From: Mytilus edulis | Taxonomy: Eukaryota | Direction: 5' to 3' | Length of the DNA stretch: 64,000 nt | Assembly (NCBI RefSeq): GCF_963676685.1 | Contig: NC_092357.1 | Location: 61,566,001-61,630,000 of the forward strand | In this document: one piece after another, positions 1 through 62,886 of the stretch | Position numbering within the stretch: the stretch's first letter is position 1 | Layout of the letters: each line of letters starts with the position of its first letter | Position numbers and translations under genes: made by a program | The notes under the pieces: model-generated | What the model was told of the DNA's origin: nothing | Databases searched by the model: none | Seen by the model: only the letters and a program-made list of their open reading frames with translations

Positions 1-489
1 TGATATATCTTTCTTCAGATGTAAGGCATAACTTATCTGATATTAGGTTACATTCGCAGGATTTAAAAGGTGATAACATATTAAACTTATCATCATTAAA
101 GACTTGTAACCTACAAGATAAAATAATCTTACAATATTGATCTGCAATAAGTTTTGTGATAACAGGTAATAGCTTTTTCCAGCTCTCAATTTGTTGTTGG
201 TTAGCAACAAAATTTCCACAAACATCATCTATAACAAAAACAGTATGTTTATCTGGTTGATAAGTATGTCTGAAATCGTCTGGTTTTTTCAAAGGTATTA
301 TTTGGTATCCTTCCTTCTGTAATATAAGTGCTGTGTGTCTTGCGATAAATGTTTTTCCAACTCCTGATGGACCAGTTAAAGTCAAACAACTTTTGTTCTG
401 TAAACATTTCATGACGTAATCACTAGCTCTTGTAGACACAAACATCTTATCTTTCGTTTCCCAATCTTTTAATTGCTTTTTAATATGAT
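1..489 (-). CDS. Exon encoding a STAND-class P-loop NTPase (nSTAND3-like), running off the left edge
   Basis: Acceptor atttcag| at 491-490, phase 1. Stop-free translation DHIKKQLKDWETKDKMFVSTRASDYVMKCLQNKSCLTLTGPSGVGKTFIARHTALILQKEGYQIIPLKKPDDFRHTYQPDKHTVFVIDDVCGNFVANQQQIESWKKLLPVITKLIADQYCKIILSCRLQVFNDDKFNMLSPFKSCECNLISDKLCLTSEERYI. Walker A GPSGVGKT, Walker B VFVIDD, sensor-1-like IILSCR. Absent from the ORF track because it has no stop inside the window. Confidence 0.92.
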
Positions 490-1729
490 CTGAAATATAT
501 TCAATTGTTAGTCTTAAAAAAAGAATGACTACTTATATTAATGATGTATTATCTATGTTATCATATAAAACATAAAACCATTGATGTTGTCTGTGGTGTC
601 GTTTGATTCCACATTTTGTTATTTCATGACCTTTTTACTTTAATTTAGGACTCTTTTTCTTGTTAAAGTCTGCACGGTGGCCTGTAATTATTTATGTTTT
701 TGTTCTAATTGGATAGTTTTTAAATTGGCATCTTGTACTACATCTTCTAAACAAAAAATTGTTCAATTAAGAATACCACCGTAATACATATAATTAATAG
801 CAAAATAATAACAGATTGTCTTGGGTAACGATTGAACATTTCTATTAAATCATTAGTTATTGAAAATCACTAAAACAAGACTTGAAATACCCAATTTTGT
901 AATTCCTAACATTAATTGCTTGGCCTTAATATGAACCAGCAAAAGTCACATGATATGCAGCATACTATCCAGGAGTTGAACCGATAAATTTATTATTTAA
1001 AGCCGGACAAATGAATACCACTCAAAGCAACTACTAGTAATTTGATCCGTTGACCTAAGATCAAGGTCACATACAGATCATGACAATATACGATACACCG
1101 TTATGAAAGTATCATAAAGAAAACAAGTTTTGGCTTTGACAAGGTTGTATCATTGTCTACTCTTTGTTTGCATGTGTATGCGGAGGGTACAGGTACCCAA
1201 ATAGTTCTTTCTAAACTTTCTAAGACTAAATAAATTGTCTTTAACTTTAAAAGTAAGCTTATTAGTTGTCTATGTTATGTCTTCTGTACTATTATTTGTC
1301 TTTTTGTCTTTTTATGTTTAGCAATGGTGTTTTCAGTTTATTTTTAACCTACGAGTTTGACTGTCTGTTTTGTATCTTTCGTTCCTGTTTTATTAAGGCG
1401 GTATGGGTGTCTAAATTAAAAATGATAGAATATGTCCATACTTTGCCAAAACATAGTGTATCTTGATATGTGATCAAAAATATAATAAAAATGATAGGAA
1501 CAAAACCAGGTTCAACCCACCATTTGTTTTTATTAAAATGTCCTGTAAGAAGTCAGGCAAATGGCCATTGTTATATTATAGTTCTTTCTGTGTGTGCTAC
1601 ATTTAAAAGATTTGTTTCTGTTGTGTCGTAGTTCTCCCTTGATATTTGATGTGTTTCCCTCATGTTTTTAAGTTTGTAACCTGGATTTTTTTTTCAATCG
1701 ATCTATGATTTTCGAAAAGCGGTATACTA

Positions 1730-3580
1730 CTAAATTGTCTATTCTTTTTACCAGTACATTTGGTAGAATCATAAACCTGATAATAAATTGTTCAAATAAG
1801 GCCTTCGAAAATAGTGGAATTAATTACTTTTGGAGTGTCAAGAACTCGTTAGAAGTACTTGATAAATTGCATGCTTATATTGGTAATTTCGAATCTGTTC
1901 AAAGTTTTTTTTTTATTTTTCTACCCTATATACCACATTGCCTCACATTCTCATTAAGAAAAAAATCACACACCTAATTAAATGGGCATTTAAAAAGTCA
2001 GAATGTGAATATATATGTTCAAACTCTTTTAGGTAATTTTTTAGTAGCAGTAAACAAAAAAACTATGTCAATTGGACATATTTTGATACTATATCTGCCC
2101 TTGAATTTTTACTAGATAACATTTTTGTTCGCTTTGGAGATTCCGTATATCGTCAGGTTATCGGAAATCAAATGAGGACTAACTGTGCACCACTTATTGC
2201 GGACCTGTTTTTGTATTGCTATGAGTTACAATTTATGACAAAAATCAGCAAAGACCCATCAAAACAACATCTAATAAACAAATTTAATAATACTTTTATC
2301 TATTTGGATGATGTTTTGGCTCTCAATAATGACGACTTCAGTATGTATTCTAAAGAAATTTATACTGTTGAGCTTACTTTAAATAAAGCTAATACTAACA
2401 ATGACCACTGCCCTTTCCTCTATCTTCATATCTATATCAGTAACGGAAAGCTTATACTAAAATTTATGATAAAAGAGATGATTTTTCATTTCCTATAGTT
2501 AGTTATCCATTTTTAGATGGTGACGTTCCCTTGTCACCATCTTACGGTGTTTATATATCTCAACTTGTACGATTCGCTCGTGTCTGTAACAATGTTTTAG
2601 ATTTTAACGAGAGAAATTTATGTACTACTGAAAAATTATTACACCTGGGTTTTCGATATGACAAACTAGTCAAAACATTTACTAAATTTTATCATCGGTA
2701 TAAAGACATCATTCGTAAATATAGCTCAACATGCAGACTTCTTATACGTTCAGGTATTTCACATCGATTTTTTTATGGAAATATTCTTTATAAAGCACAA
2801 AAATGTTAGTATTCACCTCAGAAACTTACAAAACCTTTAAATATTAAGAAGGGATATAGTTACGATACTGTTGTCAGGTCATTAAAGATTGCATATTTTG
2901 GCATTAATATTGATTCACTTATAGGGTCTTTGCATCGGAACTTAACACATTCATATATAAAAAAACAGTTCTTGGCATGACACGGGTTATGTTTTACTCA
3001 TATATGTTATGATGGTATGATACTAAACCCCTAACGGGAAGGATTTTGCCTGATATTCATATGATGAAATCATAATTTTTTAAACAGTTTAATTGAAGTC
3101 TGGAGCTGGCATGTCAGTTAACTGCAGTAGTCTGTTGTTATTTATGTATTATGTCATTTTATTTATTTTCTTTGGTTACATCTTCTGACATCAGACTCGG
3201 ACTTCTCTTGAACTGAATTTTAATGTGCGTTTTGTTATGCGTTTATTTTTCTACATTAGCTAGAGGTATAGGGGAGGGTTGAGATCTCATAAACATGTTA
3301 AACCCCGCCGTATTTTTGCGCCTGTCCAAAGTCAGGAGCCTCTGGCCTTTGTTAGTCTTGTATTATTTTGATTTTAGTTTCTTGTGTACAATTTGGAGTT
3401 TAGTATGGCGTTCATTATCACTTAACTAGTATATATTTGTTTAGGGGCCAGCTGAAGGACGCTCCGGGTGCGGGAATTTCTCGCTATATTGAAGACCTGT
3501 TAGTGACCTTCTGCTGTTGTTTTTTTCTATGGTCGGGTTGGTGTCTCTTTGACACATTCCCCATTTCCATTCTCAATTTT
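1730..3580 (+). mobile_element. Degenerate Penelope-like retroelement (probably Naiad/Chlamys type): RT plus 3' non-coding tail
   Basis: Frameshifted ORFs 1705-1977, 2172-2498 and 2531-2809 carry FWSVKNSLEVLDKL, TNCAPLIADLFLYCYE, YLDD and YGVYISQLVRFARVC. The tail 2920-3580 recurs at 49948-50601. Confidence 0.85.
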
Positions 3581-5158
3581 ACTGTTACCTTTATAAGTCT
3601 CCGTATATTTTCTCAAGCTACAGATTATGACAAAATGACACATTTTATATGGACTATACAGGGGAAAAATCATTATACTAAACTAAATGATAGAAATAAA
3701 AAATAACATATCAGAAGATAGCTTAAAGAAAATGCTTTGAGAAAATCAAAAGAAACGATAGGGTTACCGAACTTTTTTCCTGGCTAAAATACAAAATAGC
3801 AAAATTCCATACAGATTCCTTCAGAAAATGAACTAATTCAGAATTACTTCACCTTAAAATGCCAATTTAAAAACATTTAAAATCAAGAAATAAAAAAATG
3901 CACGTGTGAAAAAGTTAATATTCATAAGTTATAATCTTATAAGTGTGTTCCTCAAAATGCAAATTTACATTAGTTATCAATATTTGCTAACTTGACTGAA
4001 AATCTGGACCTTAGGTTCCCTGTTTTTTACAATTCAAGATGGCAAAAGACAGCCGATCCCAGCTTAACCAAGGGTTCGAGATGGTAAAGATGATATTATC
4101 CTTTTTTTAAGTTTGCTGATGCTATTACGAGATGGTTTACCGTTATGGAATATCTGTTTCACAATGACGACGGAAATGATTCCTTTCCCTTTTTCCCGAA
4201 TATTGTACCGATTACGACTTAACCCCGGACTTTGCGAATATAAAAGCAACACAGAGGTGCCATATGTAGTGCAGTATCTGCTTACCATTCTCATCTCCAG
4301 TTTTTGTGGGAACTTGTTGCTTAGTCCTAAGTTTCATATTTTGTGTTTATTTTATAAGATGTTTACTTGTTTTAGTTCCCATGGTGTTGCTAGGTTATTT
4401 TTCGACTTATGAGTTTGACTGTCCCTTATTTTAGCTTTCGCCTCACTTTTACATGAACAAAATGAAATATATTCAAAGTCATTAGACCGTGTACGACAAG
4501 GCGTAACAAAGGTATATACCATTAATATTAGGATTTGGTTTAAAAAATATCTGCGCCGAACTCCAATGAAGAGACAGCAATGGTCGAAATTCACATCTGA
4601 TGTTATAAAATTGGCATTGTAAATGTTATGATATTTCATTTTCAAAGTTTGCCACACGGAGTCGTTTCTATCGAAAGAGTTATTATATTTATGATATAAA
4701 TGGTTTTTGATAATATTTTGTGGATTTTGTGCATAATTCATATAGAATATGTGTAAACATACGAAATACATACGGATACGAAAACATACACATAGATTTG
4801 CTCATAATGCAATAACTAATCAATCAGGGTTACATGGGTTATGAATATGTTTGACCAAAGTTGACGCTACAGAAGCGTTGTAGTCAATTTCAAACATTGT
4901 TTGATTGAAACGATGTGATTGTGTCTCAATTCACAAGAAATATATAAAATGTGGTCATGGAAAACCAAAAATGTGTATGATATGTTTTGAATAAAACGTC
5001 AGCATCCGTTCCATATTCATGATATTGTGAAATGTAAATTTGGTGGGGAAGTTGAAAACTGTATAGTATATATGCGATCACAATCCAATTTTGAATTCAT
5101 CCGATTCCTTAAAGCTCTGTTTTATATAGATTTGTATATATATATATATATATATATA

Positions 5159-5335
5159 CAACTCGTCTAAACATCAACCCAACAATGTTAGATCTGTAAA
5201 TTTGCTTTCGCAAATTTTTGGTTCTTCCCTCGCCGGGATTCGAACCCATGCTACTGTGATATCGTGACACCAAATCGCCTGCACTGCAGCCGTCCCGCTA
5301 GACCACACGACCACCTGGGCTCTCAAAAAAGAGCT
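5159..5335 (-). mobile_element. tRNA-derived SINE-like element embedded in a (TA)n tract
   Basis: Minus strand gagcccaggTGGTCGTGTGGtctagc...atgGGTTCGAATCCcggcgag contains A-box- and B-box-like motifs, followed by a non-tRNA tail. TA repeats on both sides. Confidence 0.7.
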
Positions 5336-5591
5336 TTATATATATAATTGATTAACGTCATGTGGACATAGGTTAACTACTTTTGCGTCCGATCATCTCA
5401 ATAAAAGGGGCACCAAGATTTCACGTAAACAAATGGAATCAATAGATTTGTAGGATTTCACATCAACGTAGGATATTTTAACAATAATTTTCTGCAAATT
5501 TGTTTCGTAATCTTCCTTCATGCTTGACCATATCTGTTGTACCATATATAGATAACGTTACTTGACAGACAAACATTTAAATGAATAATAC

Positions 5592-5684
5592 CTGCGATTA
5601 TTATACTATCTTCTGCAACTTCTATAGATTTATCTATTGGACTCTTATGACAAGTTTGTATATGAAGTGTTTTTTCTGTTTTAT
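5592..5684 (-). CDS. Linker exon 3 (93 nt, phase 1-1)
   Basis: ttttgtag|...|gtatta. Encodes (D)KTEKTLHIQTCHKSPIDKSIEVAEDSIIIA. Paralogous to the exons at 8946 and 11248. Confidence 0.75.
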
Positions 5685-5904
5685 CTACAAAATATACGAA
5701 TACGTCTTGTTTGTTTAATTCTTAATGAATATTATCAAACTTTGTAAGGCTGTCAAGATAGTTTTCAACTGCAACACATATTTGTCATGATACATAAGAC
5801 ATACATATGGTATTAATTCAATATGTTCGTGTTGCTACAATGAACATATGACTATTTTGTTTTAAAAACGACACTTAAATATTAATCAAAACTAAGCTCA
5901 GGAA

Positions 5905-6360
5905 TATGGTATCTACTAAAAGACACAAGCTTCATATGCAGGCTCTGCTGGAATAATGCAACATACAAATTGAAAGTTGAGAATTTGGATTGTGATTGGA
6001 GAGATACGTTCAAAATAGCCACCAAACTTTAAAATATCTGAATTATTTGAACGTCAAAAACGGGTACATACGAAAATGATTCGAAAAAATATTCCTATGA
6101 ATCTCAATTGTAGTAAATTAATACTAAATTTCATTGCAGTAAAACAAATCTGAGTCATAAACATATGTTTTATCGGTGTTCCTAAAGACTATTTTGGGAA
6201 CATGAACATTGATTCGGTAACTTATTATCTTGTAATGAAATGTTACCCATATTCTTTTTTACTTCCAAGATGTACGCCAACACATAAGAAAGACTTGCAT
6301 TTATCTGTCTTATGCTTTATTTCAAATTTGATAAGATAAATGCATTCAACAAAGTCCTCG
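5905..6360 (-). mobile_element. Highly decayed Penelope-like RT 3' remnant
   Basis: Homologous to 7940-8400, which translates as ...PAYEAYISQ, the PLE RT C-terminal motif. Confidence 0.5.
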
Positions 6361-7379
6361 AATTATGAAGAATTCTTTTCCAACCGACGCAAATGACAGT
6401 CACTATCGTTCTATGTGATCTGAGATTGTGGAAATGATCATAAAATTTAGAATGGAAATGGAGAATGTGTCAAAGAAACAACAATCCGATCAAAGAGCGG
6501 CGGTGTGCTTCAGCTTGTCCCTAAACAAAAATATAAACTAGTTCGGGAATAATGGACGTCGTACTAAACTCCGAAATATACACAAGAACCTAAAATTAAA
6601 AATCATACAAGTCTAACAGAGGCTCCTTACATGGGACATGCACAAATATGCGGCTGGTTGAAACATGTTTTTTGAGATCTCAATCACCCCCTATACATCT
6701 AGCCTATGTAGAAAAAAACTAAACACAGAAAAATTAGACTGTTGGTTTTTGTTTTTCGTTATTTTTTTTGTACACAAATTAGGCCGTCAGTTTTCTCCTT
6801 TGAATTGTTTAACATTTGTTATTTCGAACCTTTTATAGCTGACTATGCGGTATTGGCTTTGCTCATTGTTGAAGGCCGTATAATGACCTATAGTTTTTTT
6901 TTATTTCTGTGACAATCGGTTACTTGTGATGAGCTCTCTGATTGGCACATCTGCTTTTTTTTTTTAACAAGATGTCTAACTGTTGTTTTAAGATTGAGAA
7001 CTTCGATACTTGCTCCGTTGGTTTTGTCATGCTTGTGCTTGTTAAAAAAAAGACGAAATTCATGGTAGGAAATGTAATCTCACAAATATCGCATCAAGTT
7101 AAAGATAATATCCTTTATGCAAACGCCATTGCAATTTTACTGCGAAGAATTGGCAAGCTGCAATTGGGAAACTGGAATTGACTCTTTAATAGCTAAGTTA
7201 TGATCTAAACCTACACATATTGACAATAATTTGATGTAAGTCAAGGTATGAGGTTGACTTAATTTTATCTGTTCTATACTTTATTTTCAGTTCGATGGAA
7301 TAGTTCCGTTCAACATAGTCTTAAACTTATTATAATTAGGTGAGAGGACATCGTCCTTATGGCGGTAGTTTAAGTTTAA

Positions 7380-8400
7380 TAATAATAATAGCTTCGTTTG
7401 ATTTTTATTGACAGGCTCTTGTAAGAAGTCAGTTTACTTCAAGACGGTGCGCTTTGATATTCCAATTGTCTGTTGAAAAAAATCCGTCTTCCTAAGGTAA
7501 CAAAAATATTGTCAATCAAGAAATGAATAATCTCGATATTGTCAGTTTCAGAGAGCTTTTTGTTTGAAGAAGAGTAATTTTCCACAAAGTGCGATTTTTC
7601 CTCTCTAACACAAGAGATACGTATATATTTACTTTGGTCATTGATTTCTATCAAACAAACGACCAATTGTTTCAATTTGTTTTTCAGGTTTGTATGAATA
7701 ATACTTTGGTAATGTGTAGAACGGTCAAATGTTTGATACTTATGGAAAATATTGTAAGGGGAAATGCATTTTCATGTTTGTGGTTGCTACAATGTATATA
7801 TGGCCTTTGGTTCAAATAAAACTGAATATTAATTTAAAATAACCCTAACAAAAATCGTAGATCATACCAGGTGCCCCGGAATGGTGAGTAGACCCTCTAT
7901 AAAGGCTTTCAAAATATGAAATATAAGCTCTAGCGTATCGTATCTACTGGGAGATATAAGCTTCATATGCAGGCTCTGATGGTTGGAACAATGCAACATA
8001 CAAATTGAAAGTTAAGAATTGGTAGTTCGATTGGAGAGATGCGTTCAAAATAGCCACCAAACTTTGAAATATCTTTGTAACGAAACTCGTAAGTTTATTA
8101 GAAATGCTAGCTACTTTGTATGCTAAGAAACTCATGCATGAAGTCAGCATCTTTTGAATAAGGGAAAAAGGTGGAATGAAAAGGAGCACGGAGGGTTCCC
8201 ATTGAAATGCAAATTGCTTGTTGAAAGAGTCTTTCTCAAAAGGTAATTAATAAGTCGAATGTTATCGTTGAAGTATATTTTAGTTTATTTCATTGCAGTT
8301 AAAAAAAAATGTGAGTCATAAACACGTACCTTGGGTGTTATTAAGCCACATTCTTGTTTTATCATGTGTTTCTATAAAACATTTAGGAAACTTGAGGTTG
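7380..8400 (-). mobile_element. Decayed Penelope-like RT remnants flanking a duplicated intronic segment
   Basis: ORF 7439-7675 contains FLIDNIFVTLG. ORF 7944-8189 contains PSEPAYEAYISQ. Confidence 0.55.
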
Positions 8401-8945
8401 AATGGTTATTAAGGCATGTAAACAGAATAGAAAGGATCGGAAACCTGATTGATTAACTTCCAGTGATGGCTATTATCTTATGCTAATTCGTAATGAAATA
8501 GTATATGAAATTTGTCTGTAGTACTGGATATTATATGAACGTTACTCCTGCCAAGTATTTTTTCATTTGAAACAAAGACAAATACTTCACAATATTACAA
8601 AGAAAAATAGGTGTAAACAATGGTGGTAGTACATGTAAGGGGTAAACAAGTCAAATGTAATGATTCAACTGCTAGAGGAAAAAAACAAACGCCTGGAATT
8701 AATTAGAATCCTCATCTGATTTTGTCAACCCTAAAGTCTTTAGTTACATAATTACTTTATAGTAAGCGTGTGATTGGTGATATCATTGACAAGTTCTTTA
8801 TAATTTAGACAGAGTTGTGTTTGATATCTAATAAAACGTAGACTGCTTTTTAAATAAAATGCTGACAATCGTTTACTGATAATCTTCCTCTGTGCTTTAA
8901 CATATGTTTTTATAACGTAGCATGTATCATATTTGTCAAATGTAC

Positions 8946-9023
8946 CTGATACTATTGTACTCTCATCTTCGATTTCATCAGATGTAGCCAATTCACGGAT
9001 ATAAATAGTTTCTTCTGTTTTGT
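8946..9023 (-). CDS. Linker exon 2 (78 nt, phase 1-1)
   Basis: ttttgaag|...|gtacat. Encodes (D)KTEETIYIRELATSDEIEDESTIVS. Differs from its paralogs by an in-frame 15-nt length difference. Confidence 0.75.
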
Positions 9024-9199
9024 CTTCAAAATATATGAAAAAAAATTACACGTATTAGTCTTAATGAATTATCAAACATAGTAATGTATACATTTTATTC
9101 AACTGCGACGAACATTTTTCCTGAAATATAAGAGATATCTCAAATAAAATTATTAATCTTTTTTGGCTACATCTTTTATTTCTAAGTAGCCTCACGAAC

Positions 9200-10850
9200 T
9201 GATGATTTACGAGAAGAAGTTGAACCGTACAGTTTGTCAGAATAGGTCAAAACTCTCAGGTCTCTGATAAAACGTCGCATTCATAAGTTGAAAAAACTGT
9301 GTGAAAGATCGGATAAAGTCCGTTTTAAGAGACAAAGAGGCCGGGAAATATCTAGCATCTCTTCATGATAAGTGTTTGTTGTTGTTCCTGCGGACAAAGT
9401 TTCAAATAATATTGTCTTTGTATGTAAATCGTATTACTACGAATGTCTTGTAAAATAATTCGGTATGAATGAGCACTCAGGTAACCATCCCTCAAACAAA
9501 AATATATCAATTGACAAGGATGAGATTTTACCAAATCATAAGCTCATCATGGCTTCAATGGGCATTACATTGAACACAAAATTGGAGGACTTACCTTGTT
9601 TGTATTTGATACCTAAACTTCATAAAGTTCCGTACAAACAACGATATATTGCTGGCTCATCTTCATGTTCCTGTGAAGAATTGTCCAATAGATTGACTAG
9701 AATTCTATCCGCAGTGAAAGAGGGTCTTCCGACATACTGTGAAACTGTTTACTCGCGTATGGTATTAACCATATGTGGATTCTTAAAAATTCTAAAGAAC
9801 TTCTAGATAATTTTAAATCTCGGTCTTTTTCATTTTGTTTTTCTGAAATTAGTTCTATCAAAACTTTTTATTTTTTAACCCTGTATACCACAATTCCCCA
9901 TATGAAATTGAAAAATCGACTGAAAGAAATAATCCACAATGCCTTTCAACATAAAAATGGTAGCATACGCTATAAATTTATTACTTTGGGATATCATAAG
10001 GCGTATTTTGTTTATAGTGAAAAACAAAGAGGTAAAACTATACAGAAAAACAAGTGATCAGTATGCTGGAGTTCATTATCGACAACATATTTTTTGAGTT
10101 TGGAGGTAGACTTTTTCAACAAATTGTCGGCATCCCTATGGCAACAAACTGTGCGCCTCTCCTTGCCGACCTTTTCTTATTTTCATATGAATCGGAGTTC
10201 CTTCAGGTACTAGTCAAAAACAAGAGGATCAAAGAAGCCAGATTATTTAATTTCACTTTCAGATATTGATGATGATGATGTTCTTTCCATAAATAATCCG
10301 AACTTTTTTGATTGGGTTCTATTAATATATCCCCCAGAACTAGAAATTAAAGAAACAACAGACACGGCTTCCTCCGCCTCATATTTAGACTTATATCTCG
10401 AATTTGACTTACACAGTCATCTCAATACCAGAATCTATGACAAACGAGACGATTTTAATTTTGAAATCATAAATTTCCCCCACCTTATTAGCAATAGACC
10501 AACTTCACCTGCATATGGGATATACATTTCCCAACTTATTCGATATTCAAGAACTTGCAGCTCCTACTCAAACTTTGTAAAACGTTATCAGTGTCTGATA
10601 AGAAAGTTGTTGAACTAATGGCATATCAAAGAACGTCTCGTCTTTTTTCTAAAAAAGTTCATCGGAAGGTACTAAGAGCTTGTTGATAAATATTCCATAT
10701 CAACTTCACAGATAATTCATGATGGTCTTGATGTATTATATTCTGCGTAGTGACGTTGATTATCATCTTAACAACATGTTATATAGTTTTTTCCATTCGT
10801 CTTTGTTCTAATATTAATATTACTTTTACTATTGGAATGTTTTCTGTGTA
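9200..10850 (+). mobile_element. Degenerate Penelope-like retroelement RT (second subfamily)
   Basis: Frameshifted ORFs 9465-10269 with LPCLYLIPKLHKVPYKQRYIAGS, MWILKNSKELL, TLYTTIPH and GIPMATNCAPLLADLFLFSYE. Downstream sequence reads YDKRDDFNF and AYGIYISQLIRY. Confidence 0.88.
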
Positions 10851-11247
10851 GAAAGGTCAAATGTGTAATACTTATGGAACATGTTGAAAGGGGAAATGCA
10901 TTTAATCGTTTTCTGTAAATGATATTTGGAATTCACCACCACCCAAACCTGATTCACGGTATCTGTGATGAGTTAATTCCCTAAATGGATAGTTTCACAA
11001 TGCATTACACCCGGACTTCCGTGCTGATATAATTGATTCTTATTATTTCGAAAGAGGTATGTATGGTCTGTGTTTGAATGCTATTTGTAGGATTCATATC
11101 TGTCAATAAATTATTGATAATCTACATTAGTCTCTGAATATATATATATTACTACACAAAGGCAAATAGTTTTCATTAATTAGCAGGTAAATATTTAACT
11201 GAATAATACCTTACAGTGTAATTTACATTCAAGTTCGTCAAATGTAC

Positions 11248-11340
11248 CTGAAACAACTGTACTGTCTTCTTCACCTTCAACAAATTTATCTGTTGGACTC
11301 ATATGACAAGTGTCCATATGAAGTGTTTCTTCTGTTTTGT
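11248..11340 (-). CDS. Linker exon 1 (93 nt, phase 1-1)
   Basis: atttgtag|...|gtacat. Encodes (D)KTEETLHMDTCHMSPTDKFVEGEEDSTVVS. Confidence 0.78.
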
Positions 11341-12153
11341 CTACAAATATATGATTACTTCTTGTTTGAATAATTCTCAATGGATATTATAAGATTTGTA
11401 AGGCTGTGTACATTATTTTTAACTGCAACACATATTCGTTATGATACATTAGATATGTCTCAGGTATTGTTTTAAATATGTTTGTGGTTGCTACAATGTA
11501 TATATGGTCTTTTGGTTCAAATAAAACTGAATATTAATAAAAAATAACTCTAACAAAAATCGTAGATCATACCTGGCCCCGGAATGGTGAGTAGACCCTC
11601 TATAAAGGCTTTCACCATATGAAATATAAGCTCTGGCGTTACGTATCTACTGTGAGATATAAGCTGCCATGGAAGAGACACTAATTTAAATCAGTGCCAA
11701 CCATTCATATATTTTATTTAGTTAGACAGTGTTTTTGATATCAAATATACATATTGGCCAACATGCTTTGAGTGCATCGTGAATATATAGGTATGTATGT
11801 TCCAGTAATATTGTGCGTGTGCAACGTTCAATTTGGGGTTTCCTTTCAACATTTTAACTTTGGAATAACTTCTTTTTGACTATACTCATAATTTTAAAAA
11901 CTGATCCGTTAATGGAGCACAGCTAGCTGAGTGTGCTCCATCTCTGTTGAGAATTACTTGAAGGAGCAGAAGATTGCAAATATTTCCGAATGATTCCGAT
12001 AAAATATGTTCCACAATTTTGAATTTGGATAGCAGCAAAAACTCATGTAAGAGGAGAATCACATAAGGTGTCTTTCTGCATAATGTGATTCTAATATGCA
12101 AGATCGTATCCAAGGACCTGCAAGCATGCAGTATTTTTATAGTTCTATTTATG

Positions 12154-12299
12154 CATAGGCGGATTTAAAGGAGGCCTGGCCCCCCTTTTCTGGGAAAAAC
12201 CTGGTTGATTATAGAGATTCACTGAAACGTGACTAGAGCGGGCCCCATCTTTGGCAGTCATTGGGCCCCCACTCATAAAAAATTCTAGATCCGCCACTG
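12154..12299. mobile_element. MITE with imperfect TIRs and a 5-bp TSD (hAT5-like)
   Basis: Ends cataggcggatt ... gatccgccactg, flanked by ttatg on both sides (12149-12153, 12300-12304). Confidence 0.65.
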
Positions 12300-13339
12300 T
12301 TATGTTCCTTTGAGGTGTTAATTTCTTTTTAGGGTTTGTCCACTTAAAATTGTTTACTTGTTAAGGATCTTCATGGTATCGTTAGTAAAAGATTTTCGCA
12401 ATTGTTCCTATGAAGACCTATTATTGTTCTAAGTAGCAATAATATATGAATTATGTCAGATACCAATACATATGCACAAAACTCCTACAAACTGATAAAA
12501 AACTTCTAGATACGATCAGGACTAACGGACAAAAGGTTAAAAAATATACTTGCTTACATTATCAGTAGTTATGTATAAGCGAATTATCATTTAAACTCAG
12601 GACTCATTAGTAGACATCACATTTTGTCTATGATTTTAAAAAGTATTAAGCAACCACCTAACGTTATAGTGCTAGTAGCATGACCATTGTTTGGTTATTT
12701 GTGCTTTACTTTATTTGGCTTCGGGACAAAAAAATGTTTAGTTAAGTTGTTAATAAAATGCTTTTATCTCTCCTTAAATACTTACATCGAATTGATGCTA
12801 CTTCAACAACTCATTGTGCTGACAGTTTTGACCATCTTACAGCCGATAATGTGCAATTGTGAGTTGTGTGTGAAATTTTTTTTCACAAATAAAATTGAGA
12901 AAGGAAATAGGGAATGTGTCAAAGAATGTATTTGCATAGCAATTTAATAATACACTTATACAAAAAGCTCAATCGGATAATTATCCAGTGATATCTTTTG
13001 TTATAGAGGCCTATCATGAACATTTACCCATCATAACCACCTCTGATCACCGATGATATTACAATCATGCCAAACTACATTGATCAGAAGTCTTGAAGAA
13101 GACACATTTCTTTTTTTTTATATCATATATACGTTTTCTAATTAAAACATATTTAGTTGTGGTAAAAACATTCAGTTTCTAGCAAGTTGTTGTCCCTTCA
13201 TGCACACATTAGTTATATATGCTGAGTGTCCCTCTTTTGAAATAAGAAAATTGATGTCTATTTTACAGACTAGACACAATGAACATGATGAAGTCTAAGT
13301 TTTATAAAATGTTAGGATGAACCATATAATTTTAAAAAG

Positions 13340-14262
13340 TTGAGAACAGTTAAAATACTTAACGGCTTCGCTTAGTGCAGCTGGATACACCCGCAGAGGT
13401 CCAACCATGAATATTGTGTCAAAAATTGACACAATATTCAAGCTTAATACAGGTCTGAATTTAGATTGTGATTAAATATTTGACAAATTACAGGTGTCTG
13501 AATAAATGTAGTCAAAGAAGTTGAAATTGGTCATATGAATTGAATTTATATATTCAATTAAATATATCTTACTGTTGCGCAATACTTAGTAAATTTGTTG
13601 TCAGACTATAAACAAAAAAAAAATCAATTTCTTCTCAATGTAATATTTGAAATTTATGAAAATCAATAGGGAGATTACATCAATAGCTATACATAATTCA
13701 CCAAAGTTTCACGAGAACTGCTGAAAGCATTTTTGAGTTATTGTCCAAAAACTGGAAAATGGCCCCTCTTTTACTGAATAAAACCCCCAGAACTCATAAA
13801 TGTACTATCTATAATTTATAAAAGTCTATACGGAGCTTACATTAATAGATATAAACCATTCAACAAAGTTTCACGAGAACTACTGAAAGCATTTTTAGTA
13901 ATTGTCATAAAAGTGGAAAATTCACCCATTTTTATGAATAAAACCCTGTAACTCTGAAACGTAAAATTTCAAATTAAAAAAAATCAATATATATAAACAA
14001 TTAACCAAAATTTCTTGCAAATTGGTGAAATAATTACTTGAGTTATTGTCGGAAAACTGGAAACTCTCCCTTCTTGAACGAAAAACACCCGAAATCTCGG
14101 AAACGTTAAAGCTGAAATTAATAAAAAAAACCCGAAAGGGAGCTCATGTCAAAAGTTTCATGTATATTTTAGTGCTTTTGAGTTAATGTCCGACATGTTG
14201 ACGACGAACGGACAGACGATCTATAATAAACCATAACACGTCCGTAAACGGCGTATAAAAAT
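13340..14262. mobile_element. Non-autonomous Helentron/HINE-like element with central ~165-bp tandem repeats
   Basis: About 3 diverged copies of caaagtttcacgagaactgctgaaagcatttttgagttattgtc, then a gacggacag-type microsatellite and a short hairpin before ggcgtataaaa. Boundaries approximate. Confidence 0.5.
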
Positions 14263-14264
14263 TT

Positions 14265-14850
14265 GCCGTGGGGAATTTTTGATGAATTATAGAAGAGGGA
14301 TGGTAGGGTCACCCTATCCCAACTTTGGACCTCAATCGACAATATTTCGTAACTTTACCTACCTGGGTCTGTTGGTCCAGGCCACCTTAACCAATTGCCT
14401 ATATTTTGTACCTAGTGTGGATAAAAGCTTTGCCATAGGGACTTTTTTATGATTTGAAGTTTGGAGGTGATGGGGTCACCCTACCCCAACTTTGGATTTC
14501 AATTAAAAAATCTCCGTTACTCTACCCACCTGAGTCTTTAGGTCCAGGCAATCTAAGGCAATTGCCTTTCATGTGTTTCTCGTGTGGACATAAACTTTGC
14601 CGTAGGGACTTTTAGAACCCCAACTTTAAGCTTCAATTAAAAAATTTCCGTAACTTTCGTCCAGGCAAACTAAGACAACTGCCTATCAATTGTACCTAGT
14701 GTGTACAAAAGCCACTTTGTCGTAGGGACTTTTTTTATGAATTAAAGTTAGAAGGTGGTGGGGTCACCCTATTCCAGCTTTGGACGTCAATTAAAAAAAT
14801 CCGTTACCTTACCCACGTGGGCCGTTGGTTCCAAGCAACCTTAGGCGTTA
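14265..14850. repeat. Satellite-like tandem array, ~165-170 bp unit, ~3.5 diverged copies
   Basis: ggggtcaccctaccccaactttgga recurs at ~14306, ~14472 and ~14760, with a partial copy at ~14617. Confidence 0.75.
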
Positions 14851-16932
14851 CGATTAATCAAAAGCTTTAAATCAATTCATATTTCGTTCCATTTGTGTGT
14901 CACCCTTACATAAATCCCTATTCCTATCGAAATTTATTTAAAAGATTTACCGGTTTCTAGACATAATTTGGAATAAAAAATAAAAAGTAGTTTATAGTCA
15001 GAAAGCTGCGTGTAGTTATTAGCTTTTACTTCAATTTGATATATTATATGACAACAAAATGCTGTATTTGTCGTTCCTTGACTAATCTGTTTTATTTTAT
15101 TTTATTTTTAAACTAATATATAAAGCTTGATAATTTAATTGTATAAAATATGAACTATCATGTATATTAATTGTTTCATTATTATAGAGACTACAAACCC
15201 ATCTTTGATAAAAAAATAACACTTAAAAGAGAAGGGATTAGCTAAAGGGAACTTTTAAAATCGTATAAGAGATACCCGGCTGTCAATTTTTTTTCTAGAT
15301 AAATGAATTACTAATCAAATTTGTATTTGAGAGAATAAATTACATTTCGTCTTCCTTCTGAAAACGAGTGTCGATTGATAGATTTCAAAGAACGTTTCTG
15401 TTTAATGTAAGTCTTTATTTTTAGGCATTGTTCGCTGGCTTATTGTTCACTAACTTGAGTCTGATATTATGTATCATAACGAAATCGGAGATCCAAAACG
15501 ATAGACAACGGTATACCATAATTCGTTCAGTCTAAAACAGAGTAGTATAAAAAAGATAAAGCGGAAATCTTGAACCATTATTTTTTCTGATGTTTAGTTG
15601 AGAGTAATAAAGTGGTACTTTTCAACGAAACTGTTAATCTGACAGAGGTAAAGTAATTGCAGGAAATCTAAAAAAGAATTCTTCAATTATAACAGGGACC
15701 CCTGTAATTGAGGGGGTGAACATGGGATGACTCCCACTTCCCTCCTCATGCCTATTTTGTGGTGAGGCATGAATCATTCCCTTTTCACTACCCTCGTCAT
15801 CTGGGTCCCGTCCGAATCTCCATTCCCTCCAACATACCTCCAACTCATTCCCATGCATGCTTCGATTCCAGAATTGTGTCCACCAAGTGGCAGATCTAGA
15901 TCTGGGGGGGGGGGGGGGGGGGGGGTTAGGGGTTAAAATTCCCCTTTTTTAGACGACAAATCATTTGGATGAAACATATATTTGGAACTCCTCCCCTTTA
16001 CTCCTGCCCCTGCACCCGTTCATATTTGTATCATATACTGCACTGTCATATATCTTATAGTATCTGTATGTATCATAAGAAATACTGCGACTTTTTTTAA
16101 GCAAAATGCCAAAAATAATAAAATGAATGAAATGGATACAACCTCGAGGGTACAACATAATCTAAATGAAACCATATAAGGGAAATCTTGATTATTAATT
16201 AAAGACATTTTCATATTTATTAATAACCACTTATAAAGCTAGTATTTAGGTAGACTGAACTAACGTGTAACAAACCTTCGATCGGCCAGATTGTCTCAAA
16301 ATATACAGACTGGTGTAATCAATGGTGAAGTGGTAATTAGAAAAATGTAAATATCATAATTATGATAAATTAAATGACATGATAATTATAAAATTTAAGA
16401 GTTCATTTCTTTCTAATCAAAATTTTGTAAACGTTGTGTGGCGTTTGTTGCTGTTTTCTAAACGCTACAAAATTAGAAACAAATACATCGTTTAATATGT
16501 GTTTACTGACCCTGTGTGAACTTCCAATAATGCATGCACATGTTGTTGGTAAACAGACTTTTTACAAACGTAGAAACAAATACATCGTTTAATCAAGGTA
16601 GAATTAGAAACAAATGTAGTGTTTGTTCTAACAAACGACGAACGACAAACTATAGTTCTCCTCTTATATTTAATGCGTTTCCCTCGGTTTTAGTTTGTTA
16701 TCCCGATTTTGTTTTTTGTCCATGGATTTATGAGTTTTGAACAGCGGTATACTACTGTTGCTTTTATAGACGCATTTTTAGCGAGTGCACTATAGTTTTT
16801 CGTCGGCATACAGTTCTGGAGATTCATTCTAAAACCATTGAATTGCAATTGACCTTAATTATATAATTTTTTAATATAAATTCCCTGATTGATAATTAAT
16901 GATTGAATACTTAATGATTTAATATAGATAAC

Positions 16933-17025
16933 CTGATGGAGAACTTAGTCGATTCTCAGATAGGGGTGTTTGGAATCGTCTGCTGCAGGTATCGGAAATT
17001 TAGGAAATTTGACCTACTTGGTCAA
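16933..17025 (-). other. Candidate 93-nt phase 1-1 exon carrying an in-frame TAA
   Basis: atattcag|...CAG|gttatc. Same length and phase as the linker exons. Reads (V)DQVGQIS*ISDTCSRRFQTPLSENRLSSPS. Confidence 0.3.
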
Positions 17026-17270
17026 CTGAATATTTCGTTTCTTTATATTGTTGTTAAAAGAAAGGAAAAAAGGAATACCTATTATAGCCTTTAGTCACTT
17101 ATAATTTCGTTATACATTTGATGTCCATTTAAATGCGCTTTTGTTTAAATAAAGCAATGAATTGTGTCTTTTGGACACCATCCAAATTTTATCACATGAC
17201 CCTTTTGCTTTACACTATAAAAGATATTTTTGCAATATACATATGCATTGTGTGTAAAGTTTTTAAACTA

Positions 17271-17420
17271 GAGGGACGAAAGATACCAAAGGGACAGTTA
17301 AACACATAAATCGAAAATAAACTGACAACGACATGGCTAAAAATGAAAAAGACAAACAGACAAACAATAGTACACATGACACAACATAGAAAAACTAAGA
17401 ATAAACAACACTTTCACCAA
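17271..17420 (+). repeat. Dispersed repeat (agagggacgaaagataccaaagggacag family), truncated copy
   Basis: Near-identical to 40021-40150. Further copies at ~42270 and, inverted, at ~1280-1390, ~4240-4450 and ~50915-51025. Confidence 0.75.
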
Positions 17421-18239
17421 AAATATAAGATTTTAAATTAACTGGTTTTAAAAAAAAAGTAGTAAAATAACAAATATAACAAATTTCGAGGAATATTACA
17501 AAAAACCACATCAAACGTACGGACAACAATTGTCATATTCCTAACTTAGGACGAGCATTTTTTTTTATGTAGAAATGGTGGATTAAACCTAGTGTTATGG
17601 CTAACTAAACTTCTCATATGTATTAAGTCGAAAGAAATGCCATTATTTTGACAACGATGTGTGAACAAAACAAACAGACATATTAGGTAGAATTGTCAAA
17701 AGTAGGAGAATAACAATCAACTTTATCATATAATCTTAATCACTTTAAAACAAACAAATATGTGAAAAAGAAACACAAAAAGACATATAGATTAAGCACA
17801 TTAGTAAAAATAAAGACAGAATGACAAAACAAAAACAACAAAATATAGCACAATAACAAAATGACGGGATGTATAAACACATATCTACGTTATATGTAAC
17901 AAAGACACACAAATCGCTCAGAGACAAAGCACATAAGCAAAAATGAAAGACAAGAAAAAAAAATACTCACATTTTCATGTTCAGTGAACAATTTTTAAAA
18001 AGGAATGAATACCATAATTTGAAATAAAACTGAAAAGGTTCATATCCTTATGATATGCCTTTGTAATTTGATGTTACTATAACTTCATGATAAACTGGCG
18101 CAAAGACCAACAAACTATTTTCTATAGGGATAAAACGTGCATTTCAGTCATTGTTTGAAATAATACATCGCATACTACGGTTTTTATGTTATACAAATTA
18201 ATTCCATATTAAAGATTTTTTTTATCGAAAAAGACTTAC

Positions 18240-23740: not shown

Positions 23741-23744
23741 TTGC

Positions 23745-46489: not shown

Positions 46490-47702
46490 TAGATGATAAG
46501 AACGTCAGTACTCATAATATATATTTCAAGACCAACTCGTATTATTTGTGAAGTTGATACGGGTATTTATCAACACGGTATTGGTACCTTCCGGTACACT
46601 TTTTAAAAGAAATGGCGAGACGTTATTCAGGTTTTTGTTCAGACACTGGTGACGTTCTATAAAGTCTGAGTAAGATCTACAAGCTCATACATACCGATAA
46701 AACTGGGAAAATGCATATTTCATATGCAGGTGAAGTTAGTATATTGCTACTAAGGTTTGGGAAATAATTATAATAGTGATTATTTCAAAATTCAAGTCGT
46801 CTCGTTTGTCATATTTTCCAGTACTAAGATGACTGTGTATGTCAAATTCGATGGTATATGTCTGAAAATGAGGCAGAGGTAGCCGTGCCTGTGGTCTTCC
46901 TTTAAGTGTTAGTTCTGTAGGATATATTAATGTAACCCAATCAGAAAAATTCTAATGGGAAAGGACAGCAGCAATATATCTGAATGTGAACATAAAACAT
47001 TTCCTTGATATTCTTGATTTTGACAAGTGTCTGAACAAACGCCGTTTCATTTGAAAATAAGGAAAGGTATGCAAAGAGAGGTGCATAGTTCGTTCCCATA
47101 CGAATGCCGTCAATTTGTTGAAAAAATATACCACCAAGTTCAACAAATATGTTGTCAAAAAATACTTCAGCATACTGATCACGTGTTCCCCAGTGTAGCA
47201 TGTTTGTTTTACTTTTTTATTCACTTTAAATAAAATACGCCGTATTATTTCCCTTAGTAATAGACTTATAGCGCATGCTACAATTTTTATATAGAAAAGC
47301 ATTGTGAATTATTTCTTTTAGACTATTTTTCAATTTCACATTGGGAATTGTGGTGCACAATGTTGAAAAATCAAAATTTTTGATAGTACTATTTTGTTAT
47401 TTAAAATCATTCAAAAGTTCTTTAATTTTTTTTAGAATCCGTATATGATTAATGTTTTCTGGCGTTTGTTAATACCACTACGCCTGTAAACAGTTTCACA
47501 GAATTTTGAAAGACCCCCTTACCTTGCGGACAGATAATTTGTCAATCTAATAGATAATTCTTTAGGCGAACATGCAGATAAGCCGGCAATGTTCCGTTGT
47601 TTGTACGGAACTTTGTCAAGCTTATATACACAATTCAAACAAGGAACGTCCTCCGATTTGTTGTTCAATGTAATGTTCATTGGTGCCGTAAAGGACTTGT
47701 GA
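46490..47702 (-). mobile_element. Degenerate Penelope-like RT (same subfamily as 9200-10850)
   Basis: Reads DNIFVELGGIFFQQIDGIRMGTNYAPLFAYL and FTFRYI. Reverse-complement similarity to 9530-10760. Confidence 0.85.
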
Positions 47703-52508: not shown

Positions 52509-52802
52509 CTCCAGGTACACAAATGCTTGTTTCGTCACTTTGTTTACTTTCGTAGGAGTTATTTACGTATGTTGATATTCTAAACCGGTTAATAGTTGAG
52601 GGTAAAATATTAGAGCATGGCTTTGAACAGTACAGTGTGTCTGGTTCAACTGCCCAGAAATCGTCATTCTTCCATTTATCAGTACTGGTTTCAGTTATAT
52701 AAATTCTATATTCCGTTATTTTCATTGGTAAATTGGCAGGTTTTGACCATCTAAACTTCAGAGAATCCGCTTCCTTCGTAACTGTAAAGTCACTTGGTGG
52801 GC
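52509..52802 (-). CDS. FN3 exon type A (294 nt, phase 1-1)
   Basis: ttttacag|...|gttagt. Encodes GPPSDFTVTKEADSLKFRWSKPANLPMKITEYRIYITETSTDKWKNDDFWAVEPDTLYCSKPCSNILPSTINRFRISTYVNNSYESKQSDETSICVPG. Confidence 0.92.
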
Positions 52803-54287: not shown

Positions 54288-54581
54288 CTCCGACCACATA
54301 GGTTTGTTCGTCGCTTTGTTTGCTTTCTGGTAACTTATCAAAACAAGTAGATATTCTGAATCTGTATGTTGTTGATGGAAAGATATTAGCTTCCGTCCAA
54401 TCATGACATAATTGGTCTGCATTAACAACAAAGAAATCAGCATTTTCCCAATTGAAAGATGATGAAACATCAATTGTAAAATAAATTTTGTACTGATTTA
54501 TGTGCGCTGATCCTGTATTCGGTTTTGACCACGTAAATTTTAAGCACTCGTGTCCTGTTACGTTGAAATTGGATGGGGGGT
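54288..54581 (-). CDS. FN3 exon type B (294 nt, phase 1-1)
   Basis: attttag|...|gtaagt. Encodes DPPSNFNVTGHECLKFTWSKPNTGSAHINQYKIYFTIDVSSSFNWENADFFVVNADQLCHDWTEANIFPSTTYRFRISTCFDKLPESKQSDEQTYVVG. Confidence 0.92.
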
Positions 54582-55575: not shown

Positions 55576-55869
55576 CTCCAGGTACACAAATGCTTGTTTC
55601 GTCACTTTGTTTACTTTCGTAGGAATTATTTACGTATGTTGATATTCTAAACCGGTTAATAGTTGAGGGTAAAATATCAGAGCATGGCTTTGAACAGTAC
55701 AGTGTGTCTGGTTCAACTGCCCAGAAATCGACATTCTTCCATTTATCAGTACTGGTTTCAGTAATATAAATTCTATATTCTGTTATTTTCATTGGTAAAT
55801 TGGCAGGTTTTGACCATCTAAACTTCAGAGAATCCGCTTCCTTCGTAACTATAAAGTCACTTGGTGGGC
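55576..55869 (-). CDS. FN3 exon type A (294 nt, phase 1-1)
   Basis: ttttatag|...|gttagt. Three amino-acid differences from the 52509 copy. Confidence 0.92.
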
Positions 55870-57360: not shown

Positions 57361-57657
57361 CTCCGACCACATAGGTTTGTTCGTCGCTTTGTTTGCTTTC
57401 TGGTAACTTATCAAAACAAGTAGATATTCTGAATCTGTATGTTGTTGATGGAAAGATATTAGCTTCCGTCCAATCATGACATAATTGGTCTGCATTAACA
57501 ACAAAGAAATCAGCATTTTCCCAATTGAAAAATGATGAAACATCAATAATTGTAAAATAAATTTTGTACTGATTTATGTGCGCTGATCCTGTATTCGGTT
57601 TTGACCACGTAAACTTTAAGCACTCGTGTCCTGTTACGTTGAAATTGGATGGGGGGT
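57361..57657 (-). CDS. FN3 exon type B (297 nt, phase 1-1)
   Basis: attttag|...|gtaagt. Carries an in-frame +3 insertion (FTIID) and an S>F change relative to the 54288 copy. Confidence 0.92.
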
Positions 57658-60808: not shown

Positions 60809-61102
60809 CTCCAGGTACACAAATGCTTGTTTCGTCACTTTGTTTACTTTCGTAGGAATTATTTACGTATGTTGATATTCTAAACCGGTTAATAGTTGAG
60901 GGTAAAATATCAGAGCATGGCTTTGAACAGTACAGTGTGTCTGGTTCAACTGTCCAGAAATCGACATTCTTCCATTTATCAGTACTGGTTTCAGTAATAT
61001 AAATTCTATATTCCGTTATTTTCATTGGTAAATTGGCAGGTTTTGACCATCTAAACTTCAGAGAATCCGCTTCCTTCGTAACTGTAAAGTCACTTGGTGG
61101 GC
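60809..61102 (-). CDS. FN3 exon type A (294 nt, phase 1-1)
   Basis: ttttatag|...|gttagt. Near-identical to the other recent A copies (FWTVE variant). Confidence 0.92.
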
Positions 61103-62592
61103 CTATAAAATATAAAAGATAAAACCTACAAATCAGGCACAAGGACCAACCTTCGAAAATTGAAATGCATAATTTAAATGTGTTCACGCTTTTATCTTAG
61201 CTAAATATTTTGAACCATTTAATCAAAAGAACACAAAACGAAAAGAGCAGCTACTTTTAATAAAATTATTTTTTGTAATACATATGAACCAAAAACGCCA
61301 TTAAAATATACCACGCTGTCATTTACATCACAGACGTATTAAAAAGAAAGATAAGGTCAGCTATGACATAAGGTATGAATCGTCGTCAAGGAGTCAACTC
61401 TCCCAAAGAGATCAAATGACACAAAAATTAACAATTAAAGGTGCTTCAGCAATGAACAAAGCCCGTACCGCATTGACAGCTAAAAATGCCCCGAAATGGC
61501 AATTGTAGTTCAAATCAACAGAGACAACTATCAGCCTTATTTACGTCAAAAAAATATGTAACACAATAACTGACGACAACCACTGACTTACAGACTTAGG
61601 ACAGACACAGGCATGTGGCCGGTTTAAACTTGTTAGAAAACGCCAACCCCTCCTAACCTGGTACAGTGGTGTAACAATACAATATCAGAACAAACTATAT
61701 ATAGTTGAAAAAGGCTGAACTCATAAGATGAAAACAAGTATAAATACATCTCATAAAAACACAGTGGACGTAAACGTGTACTTATACATCGTCACAACAA
61801 TGAGACTAAAGAACAGAACTGAAAGTACTTACATTTACTGACAGCTAGTGCAAAGCTTATAACAACTAATAAACAAACATCATGCATCTAAGACTAAAAT
61901 GTCAATCAGTACACATCGAACATCAAATGAATTTTGTGTAAAGACGTCATATATAGTAAGAAAAAACATGTACTTATGCAATGTCAAGAAACAGGTATCG
62001 ACAGATGGTAGAGCCGTTAATGTAAAAATGTATATTCAAATAGAGTTTAGTTTGAACTTAATTTTCTGATAACAACTCAATATAAATACCAATAAAAACA
62101 ATATTCAAAGATCTGTTTACGTGTTTAGTTGTTAGACTTTAATCATAAGTTTATTTAAACAATCTATAAGATTACATGGATCATTTCTTAATTGATCATG
62201 TTAAATACAGACTGAATAATCGGCAGTAAATGATGACACCAGCAAGGTTTTCATTTTTTCCCTCACAATTTTTAATGTTAAATATGTCAAATATTTAATT
62301 TTCTTTCTGATAACTCTTGATTGAATAGATTGATTAACAATAAGAAAAAGTTTACACCAAGAAGCGGATAGTTATTCCGATTTTATGATAATGTATAATT
62401 GTTGCTGCGAAAAGTCTCCAAGACGTAAGAAAATATAAGAGAGTAAGCTGCGACTCTTTAAACAAATTTGGGGAAAATGACGTATTATTTAAACGTATTC
62501 ACACGTCTATAGTTCCTATATAGACATTAAAATCAGTAGCATAGACATCTTGTCTTTTATCTTGTTTTGAACTAAACTCATAATTGACTTAC

Positions 62593-62886
62593 CTCCGACA
62601 ACATAGGTTTGTTCGTCGCTTTGTTTGCTTTCTGGTAACTTATCAAAACAAGTAGATATTCTGAATCTGTATGTTGTTGATGGAAAGATATTAGCTTCCG
62701 TCCAATCATGACATAATTGGTCTGCATTAACAACAAAGAAATCAGCATTTTCCCAATTGAAAGATGATGAAACATCAATTGTAAAATAAATTTTGTACTG
62801 ATTTATGTGCGCTGATCCTGTATTCGGTTTTGACCACGTAAATTTTAAGCACTCGTGTCCTGTTACGTTGAAATTGGATGGGGGGT
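62593..62886 (-). CDS. FN3 exon type B (294 nt, phase 1-1); most 5' exon visible
   Basis: attttag|...|gtaagt. Protein identical to the 54288 copy. Confidence 0.92.

Follow-up and report, generated by a model that had tools for sequence, protein, structure and literature searches.

A candidate receptor-like gene of Mytilus edulis in which an expanding FN3 array may lead into an nSTAND3-ankyrin exon

The 64,000-nucleotide stretch of Mytilus edulis DNA analysed here (the window, C14:61566001-61630000) covers most of what we read, on balance, as one very large gene on the minus strand, running from a transmembrane (TM) anchor through to an nSTAND3 NTPase and ankyrin repeats. The gene model spans C14:61.5588-61.6451 Mb, ~86 kb in all, and amounts to ~4,050 codons. 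In this model a candidate signal exon would be followed by two Cys-rich ectodomain exons (all three beyond the window), a TM helix, ten FN3 domains, an alpha/beta domain with a Gly-Ser turn (the GS-turn domain), one further FN3, three acidic linkers, the nSTAND3 NTPase and an array of ankyrin repeats, and the encoded product would be a membrane-anchored, receptor-like STAND protein. Open frames, splice sites and phases were taken straight from the sequence of the window and its flanking DNA. All searches were made exon by exon or with database proteins as queries, those in the mussel's own genome against the 1.37-Gb assembly; the homologue look-ups covered limited length ranges and word-sharing candidates, so a blank among them is weak evidence.

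A first-pass annotation of the window had named 17 same-strand exons with phases that chain in frame. All 17 are present at the places it gave, on the minus strand and bounded by AG acceptors and GT donors, and the phase chain was borne out by direct reading. It had also counted at least ten FN3 domains; ten precede the GS-turn domain (62886 to 30571) and one follows it. The ten are encoded by exons of phase 1-1, which we call A1 (62593-62886, 294 nt), B1 (60809-61102, 294 nt), A2 (57361-57657, 297 nt), B2 (55576-55869), A3 (54288-54581), B3 (52509-52802), A4 (37204-37497), B4 (31974-32267), A5 (31424-31717) and the divergent C (30571-30849, 279 nt). Three exons match the Pfam fn3 family (PF00041) above its cut-off and the others more weakly, in support of their membership in FN3, with which the seven-strand beta-sandwich fold agrees (E 8e-8 for B4 and 4e-6 for A5, both above the cut-off, 3e-7 for C and 2e-4 for A4). 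The array was said to be expanding, and the DNA agrees: three A/B pairs, tandem copies of a ~3.07-kb two-exon unit, are 98-99.7% alike (A2 98% and A3 99.7% identical to A1; B2 99% and B3 98% identical to B1), which points to recent growth by tandem duplication. Three older copies are 82-84% alike, A4 being 84% identical to A1. Within the 15-kb intron between B3 and A4, open frames like those of a retroelement reverse transcriptase occur at 46739-47308 on the minus strand; the one frame tested had no Pfam match.

At the other end of the gene model, the exon for the last FN3 (18240-18521, 282 nt, phase 1-1) is followed by the three linker repeats that had been placed before the NTPase, all of phase 1-1: L1 (11248-11340, 31 codons, acidic), L2 (8946-9023, 26 codons) and L3 (5592-5684, 31 codons), the last 97% identical to a linker of the M. 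edulis gene model P0077. When the linker exons were duplicated, their introns were copied with them; in the own-genome search these exons are unique to this locus. A likeness of the linkers to the N-terminal repeats of the M. edulis protein P0018 and to the penultimate exon of the paralogues was too weak to call. The giant last exon begins within the window (1-489, phase-1 acceptor at 489) and continues for 7,181 bases past the window start to C14:61558820 as one open frame of 2,556 codons, holding nSTAND3, a helical region and ~37 ankyrin repeats. The earlier assignment to nSTAND3 holds well, since Pfam PF20720 matches 1-489 with an E of 2.5e-28 (99.2 bits against a cut-off of 27.2) and the whole exon scores 93.4 bits against the same profile. 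Its Walker A and B motifs can be read in the translation of 1-489 as GPSGVGKT and VFVIDDV, and the ankyrin repeats that were to be looked for in the flank lie in the same open exon as the NTPase. No effector domain, whether HEPN, CARD or another, is encoded in the copy at this locus. In the last intron, 1726-3000 is an interspersed repeat with more than 40 copies at 90-95% identity on many chromosomes.

The upstream part of the gene model is best described beside three Mytilus relatives of the array. P0099 (M. galloprovincialis VDI61359) and P0100 (694 aa, the open frame of a 2,670-nt Logan contig that is most simply read as a cDNA) consist of a signal peptide, a Cys-rich region, a TM helix, two FN3 domains, the GS-turn domain and another FN3, and P0083 (M. 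californianus RefSeq XP_052065563) starts at a hydrophobic segment and ends in one further FN3 and a beta-propeller. A search of the flanks for a start or signal exon yielded, on the same strand as the array, a hydrophobic exon, two Cys-rich exons and a candidate signal exon. The hydrophobic exon (63757-63912, minus strand; TM or signal-anchor) encodes a 25-residue hydrophobic run, its phase-1 donor (ACTA/GTAAGT) sits 870 bases before the first FN3 exon, and it stands where P0099 and P0100 have their TM helix and P0083 its N-terminal hydrophobic segment. At 63826 there is an ATG in frame, which permits a start like that of P0083, with the hydrophobic exon as first coding exon. The Cys-rich exons lie 11-14 kb past the window with fitting phases, at 78215-78035 and 75200-74895 in window numbering extended upstream (the second is C14:61640895-61641200), and show 44-51% identity to the Cys-rich region of P0099 and 40-46% to that of P0100; the candidate signal exon is near 79074. 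The hydrophobic and Cys-rich exons are colinear with P0099 and P0100, and it is this colinearity that links them to the array.

The array comes after a TM helix, and given a signal peptide that is cleaved off ahead of the ectodomain, the FN3 domains and everything C-terminal of the helix would probably lie on the cytosolic side. The FN3 and supposed SEA exons had been taken for an extracellular or matrix module; with hydrophobic and Cys-rich exons preceding the array in the order seen in P0099 and P0100, that view probably does not hold. We also rejected the hydrophobic exon as plain proof of a secreted FN3 protein, since in the relatives such a segment can be a TM helix that follows an ectodomain. 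The Cys-rich ectodomain exon belongs to a very large family genome-wide (75 scored matches out of 307 first-look candidates), with clusters on chromosomes 8, 14, 7, 11 and 12.

The GS-turn domain is split between two exons, one for beta1-alpha1-beta2 (28981-29140, phase 1 in and 2 out), recognised by homology to P0099, and one for the GS turn and beta3-alpha2-beta4 (18652-18803, phase 2 in and 1 out), which carries the turn as PGSVYVV and is 76% identical to the gene model P0076; neither has a Pfam family. The 10-kb intron between them contains a minisatellite-like stretch (27748-28131, minus strand) with all three frames open (repeating SKSSAFQNLRLFKIFGF). The first-pass annotation had called this a SEA domain with an intact G/S site. 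The split domain and its GS turn stand, and the name is not confirmed: the Pfam SEA model (PF01390) matched neither exon half, nor the homologues P0093, P0099 and P0100 that carry the whole domain, at E up to 5. No TRADD-N-type family was reported in the Pfam scans of the exon halves and homologues either. In the AlphaFold model of P0099, residues 377-473 follow a beta-alpha-beta-beta-alpha-beta order, at a pLDDT of only 48-69 (means of 10-residue blocks). The nearest named clusters in a protein language-model look-up were SEA, at scores of just 0.75-0.76 that serve as a lead only, and a structure search of the whole PDB and a PDB profile search returned FN3 matches alone, neither supporting nor excluding SEA or TRADD-N.

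With the SEA of mucins and perlecan (PF01390) the domain shares the beta-alpha-beta-beta-alpha-beta sandwich and the G/S at the beta2-beta3 turn, insofar as the order in the low-confidence model is right; it differs in escaping the Pfam model and in standing after a TM helix, not in the ectodomain. The location C-terminal to a single TM helix, as far as the topology can be inferred, is not the extracellular or lumenal one expected of SEA. The order of strands and helices in the P0099 model, low in confidence as it is, and the GS turn also agree with TRADD-N, an RRM-like two-layer alpha+beta sandwich with a conserved small-residue-Ser motif in its beta2-beta3 turn (PMC8195603). To judge from the exon order set against published architectures, the surroundings are those of TRADD-N: the domain stands before nSTAND3 and ankyrin repeats, behind a Cys-rich ectodomain and TM helix, and with FN3 preceding. 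On account of this context we rate a TRADD-N-type adaptor domain as somewhat more likely than a true SEA. A literature search found no paper naming both TRADD-N and Mytilus.

Kaur, Iyer, Burroughs and Aravind (2021, eLife, PMC8195603) described an expansion of ~50 proteins in Crassostrea virginica that have a Cys-rich ectodomain, a TM helix, an intracellular death effector domain (DED) and a TRADD-N of the NCOA6 clade, with a variable C-terminal part drawn from STAND NTPases, HEPN, AIG GTPases, ankyrins and beta-propellers. One of the architectures listed is 'TRADDN-NCOA6+nSTAND3+Ankyrin' (XP_022297444.1, 2,660 aa; PMC8195603, Figure 4 source data). The same paper lists amphioxus 'Death+FN3+FN3+TRADDN-DEDD2' proteins, FN3+FN3+TRADDN-DEDD2 standing beside Death or CARD. 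The first-pass annotation knew of no description of such a combination, but the receptor-like TRADD-N/nSTAND3/ankyrin class of the oyster and the FN3+TRADD-N proteins of amphioxus were thus in print. These published architectures, together with the TM helix upstream, indicate that the architecture is neither an unprecedented fusion nor a decoy.

By comparison of architectures, the gene is probably the mussel counterpart of those oyster proteins that consist of TM, Cys-rich, TM, an alpha-rich region, TRADD-N(NCOA6), nSTAND3 and ankyrin repeats. Common to both are a Cys-rich ectodomain with TM upstream (here in the upstream exons, tied to the array by colinearity), a GS-type alpha/beta domain before nSTAND3, a long ankyrin array and a lineage-specific expansion in bivalves; the comparison is with published architectures, and the equation of the alpha/beta domain with TRADD-N is putative. 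In place of the alpha-rich or DED spacer of the oyster the mussel locus has ten FN3 exons, among which Pfam and a tblastn of the region found no death-fold match. It also has one FN3 and three acidic linkers between the alpha/beta domain and the NTPase, and a longer ankyrin array; the whole model has ~4,050 aa against ~2,650 aa. What would be new, if the exons are read correctly, is a mussel version in which a long, actively expanding FN3 array replaces the DED/alpha-rich spacer. The amphioxus FN3+FN3+TRADDN-DEDD2 proteins offer the same placement of FN3 directly N-terminal to a TRADD-N-type domain, in intracellular proteins of apoptosis and immunity; they belong to a different TRADD-N clade and phylum and lack the TM, ectodomain and nSTAND3.

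Two Mytilus families each resemble one end of the gene. The Cys-rich/TM/FN3-FN3-'SEA'-FN3 family (P0100, P0099, P0083) keeps the same order up to the last FN3, which shows ~30% identity with P0099 and P0083 (the Cys-rich exon being 46-51% identical), but has two or three FN3 domains before the alpha/beta domain as against ten, and ends in a short tail or beta-propeller with no STAND NTPase. At the other end, the CARD/HEPN-nSTAND3-ankyrin proteins (P0001, which is M. trossulus LOC134718119; P0018 of M. edulis; P0002; P0012) are 55-66% identical over the NTPase and helical part and share the giant last exon, its acceptor position and the type of ankyrin. Unlike this locus, they begin with a CARD, HEPN_DZIP3 or HEPN-like N-terminus that is cytosolic, and ahead of the giant exon they have a coiled-coil exon with '...IIPKNIR' at its end; they are 1,400-1,800 aa long, without FN3, TM or Cys-rich part. 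Another protein, P0167 of M. californianus (LOC127726006, RefSeq), combines a HEPN-like N-terminus with NB-ARC, four cadherin repeats and a C-terminal TM helix, and is to be read as a merged model or else as a further STAND protein carrying domains of surface type; as it looks like a merged gene model, we dropped it as support for a fusion of surface domains to STAND.

Several observations suggest that the two ends belong to one transcript. The last FN3 exon has a consensus donor (AAG/GTAAGT) and is therefore not built as a terminal exon. The acceptor position of the giant exon is conserved in all paralogues, in which a coding exon always precedes it, and there is no ATG in the open frame upstream of the giant exon. 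No CARD, HEPN or coiled-coil remnant and no other start-bearing NLR exon was found within 490-18239 by tblastn at E up to 1. Bivalve FN3 relatives were collected by phmmer with the last FN3 exon against 1.84 billion representatives, and three gene models from other assemblies join the closest of them (51-70% identity) to linker repeats and NLR parts: P0077 passes from FN3 through L2-like and L3-like linkers to ankyrin, P0072 from FN3 through five linkers to a HEPN-like domain, and P0076 from half of the 'SEA' domain through FN3 to a HEPN-like domain. The FN3 and GS-domain parts of all three have this locus as their sole match in this genome. Both P0077 and P0072 stem from an older M. edulis assembly; the linkers of P0077 are 97% identical to L3 while its FN3 is only 51% identical, and nothing in the present assembly corresponds to the locus of P0072 (with an FN3 that is 70% identical, five linkers and a HEPN-like domain), a pattern that suggests haplotype or presence/absence variation at the locus.

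The module also runs towards HEPN-like exons elsewhere in the genome. On C7 (64.60-64.66 Mb) and on contig C608, HEPN_DZIP3-like exons that have phase-1 acceptors come after it on the same strand, and the C7 exon lacks the ATG that free-standing genes have at that point. The C7 paralogue (64609176-64652879, plus strand; L022-L029) comprises Cys-rich exons, a TM helix, FN3 exons, the second half of the GS-turn domain, two near-identical FN3 exons and the HEPN_DZIP3-like exons, with no nSTAND3 exon in the next 27 kb. C608, an unplaced contig of 29,125 bp (L011-L013), carries three FN3 exons, a split GS-turn domain, one FN3 and a weak HEPN_DZIP3-like frame, and starts with an exon ending '...NEVIPKNVR', of the type that precedes nSTAND3 giant exons. 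A further paralogous Cys-rich/TM/FN3/GS-domain/FN3 locus lies on C11 (39379771-39421753, plus strand; L019-L021), and 11-12 kb downstream of its module, on the same strand, a 682-codon frame encodes a Mab-21 C-terminal domain (Pfam E 7e-13), which makes it a cGAS-like receptor candidate.

A number of results weigh against a single gene. The three joining models are short, start in mid-domain and come from older annotations, perhaps ab initio, and the last FN3 exon found no match among proteins of 86-273 aa. Members of the family with better support end otherwise, P0100 in a short tail and P0083 in one more FN3 and a beta-propeller. In a collection of 5.8 billion sequences this NTPase exon is absent from the proteins of 1,406-4,473 aa, none being 100% identical, so the locus is apparently unannotated, whether fused or as a separate long gene. 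The relatives listed for the NTPase (69) and for the P0012 HEPN-like N-terminus (57), with P0008 and P0012 common to the two sets, all lack fn3 and SEA. Shuffled domain exons are most often of phase 1-1 and unrelated exons join in frame by chance at about one junction in three, so the in-frame chaining of symmetric exons is weaker evidence than it appears. The linker exons show 79% identity as against 82% for the flanking introns, with 12 non-synonymous changes to 1 synonymous, and nothing in them shows coding constraint. Finally, the acceptor of the TM exon (63913-63914) is weak and the C7 paralogue has its TM helix within Cys-rich exon 2, which together leave the link of the TM exon to the ectodomain exons uncertain here.

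The chief alternative, rather unlikely in our estimate yet to be taken seriously, is that of two adjacent genes on the same strand, a Cys-rich/TM/FN3/'SEA'/FN3 receptor-like gene and, after it, an nSTAND3-ankyrin gene without effector. The first would end past exon 18521-18240, by read-through into 18 codons and a stop or in a terminal exon that escaped recognition. The transcript of the second would begin in L1, which has in-frame Met codons, or ahead of it, or else in the last intron, with codon 15 of the giant exon, a Met, as the start of translation. Such an arrangement would fit all the listed annotated nSTAND3 relatives, which have a CARD, HEPN or HEPN-like N-terminus of their own and no FN3, as well as P0100 and P0083, which have transcript or RefSeq support and end without an NLR, and phase 1-1 exons would chain in frame across two genes by default. 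The C11 locus (39.38-39.42 Mb), where the module is followed by a same-strand Mab-21-like frame with a possible ATG of its own, indicates that the module can adjoin immune genes without being fused to them. Yet the last FN3 exon, by its consensus donor, calls for a partner downstream, and no candidate terminal exon was found; the conserved acceptor of the giant exon likewise requires a coding exon upstream. An NLR made up of 88 acidic linker residues, NTPase and ankyrin would have no N-terminal effector, unlike every relative seen, and the recurrence of FN3, linkers and NLR in three other models, along with the published oyster fusion, favours one gene.

It is a good deal less probable that the locus is a young, haplotype-specific rearrangement with no functional product, in which a deletion removed HEPN-like and coiled-coil exons from between the linkers and the NTPase and the frames are open only because the event is recent. 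Mytilus is known for presence/absence variation, no annotated protein of the locus was found in the collection over the length ranges searched, the linker exons evolve like their own introns, and the closest FN3 relatives in other assemblies lead into HEPN-like domains (P0072, P0076), of which there are none here. Against this, it is unlikely that a 2,556-codon frame, and besides it 16 open exons whose splice sites are intact, would last long without selection, and the oyster proteins are likewise without HEPN between TRADD-N and nSTAND3. Least credible, and highly improbable in our view, is the original proposal of an undescribed protein in which exon shuffling set an extracellular or matrix FN3+SEA array before a cytosolic STAND NTPase, to serve as integrated decoy or sensor. 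The in-frame chain on which it was built is real and the language-model look-up does lead to SEA clusters, at the same scores of a mere lead, but the array has TM and Cys-rich exons upstream of it, the Pfam SEA model fails to match, and both FN3+TRADD-N and TM+Cys-rich+TRADD-N+nSTAND3+ankyrin had already been published as intracellular or receptor-like proteins; no support was found for the decoy idea.

Should the preferred reading of a single gene be right, a stimulus at the ectodomain or the ankyrin array would cause the STAND module to exchange nucleotide and oligomerise at the membrane, and the TRADD-N-like/FN3 scaffold would then recruit downstream adaptors of the TRAF or death-fold type. 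The gene would encode a membrane-anchored STAND/NLR-like receptor of ~4,000 residues and the receptor-like TRADD-N-nSTAND3-ankyrin class of the oyster would reach the mussels; to our knowledge there is no bench work on any member of this class. The stretch that separates switch from membrane would be swappable, a DED/alpha-rich region in one case and an FN3 array in the other, and expandable by very recent duplication of exon pairs. With two genes, the locus would be an ordinary neighbourhood of two expanded immune families. As the FN3/GS-domain/FN3 module is also found before HEPN-like and beta-propeller parts in Mytilus and beside a Mab-21-like frame at one locus, it may be a general cytosolic scaffold for bivalve immune effectors.

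A bolder idea, to which we give very little chance, is that the GS-turn domain is a cytosolic self-cleaving SEA-type module that holds the STAND-ankyrin part non-covalently on a membrane-anchored FN3 stalk. The NTPase would be freed to oligomerise by force, by a protease from a pathogen or when the stalk is degraded. It would then be a membrane-tethered analogue, made from unrelated parts, of the 'functional degradation' switch of NLRP1 and CARD8, and duplication of FN3 pairs would tune the length of the stalk or its surface as bait. The likeness to the FIIND of NLRP1/CARD8 is one of idea, namely a module that cleaves itself and sits within an NLR or ahead of it; FIIND has an unrelated ZU5-UPA fold.

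Downstream of the gene, the opposite strand of C14:61550099-61552883 holds a C-type lectin fragment (L005:4099-4344, plus strand, Pfam E 2.4e-5), and the same downstream stretch includes a Ser/Lys-rich, low-complexity frame of 209 codons (L005:6257-6883, plus strand).

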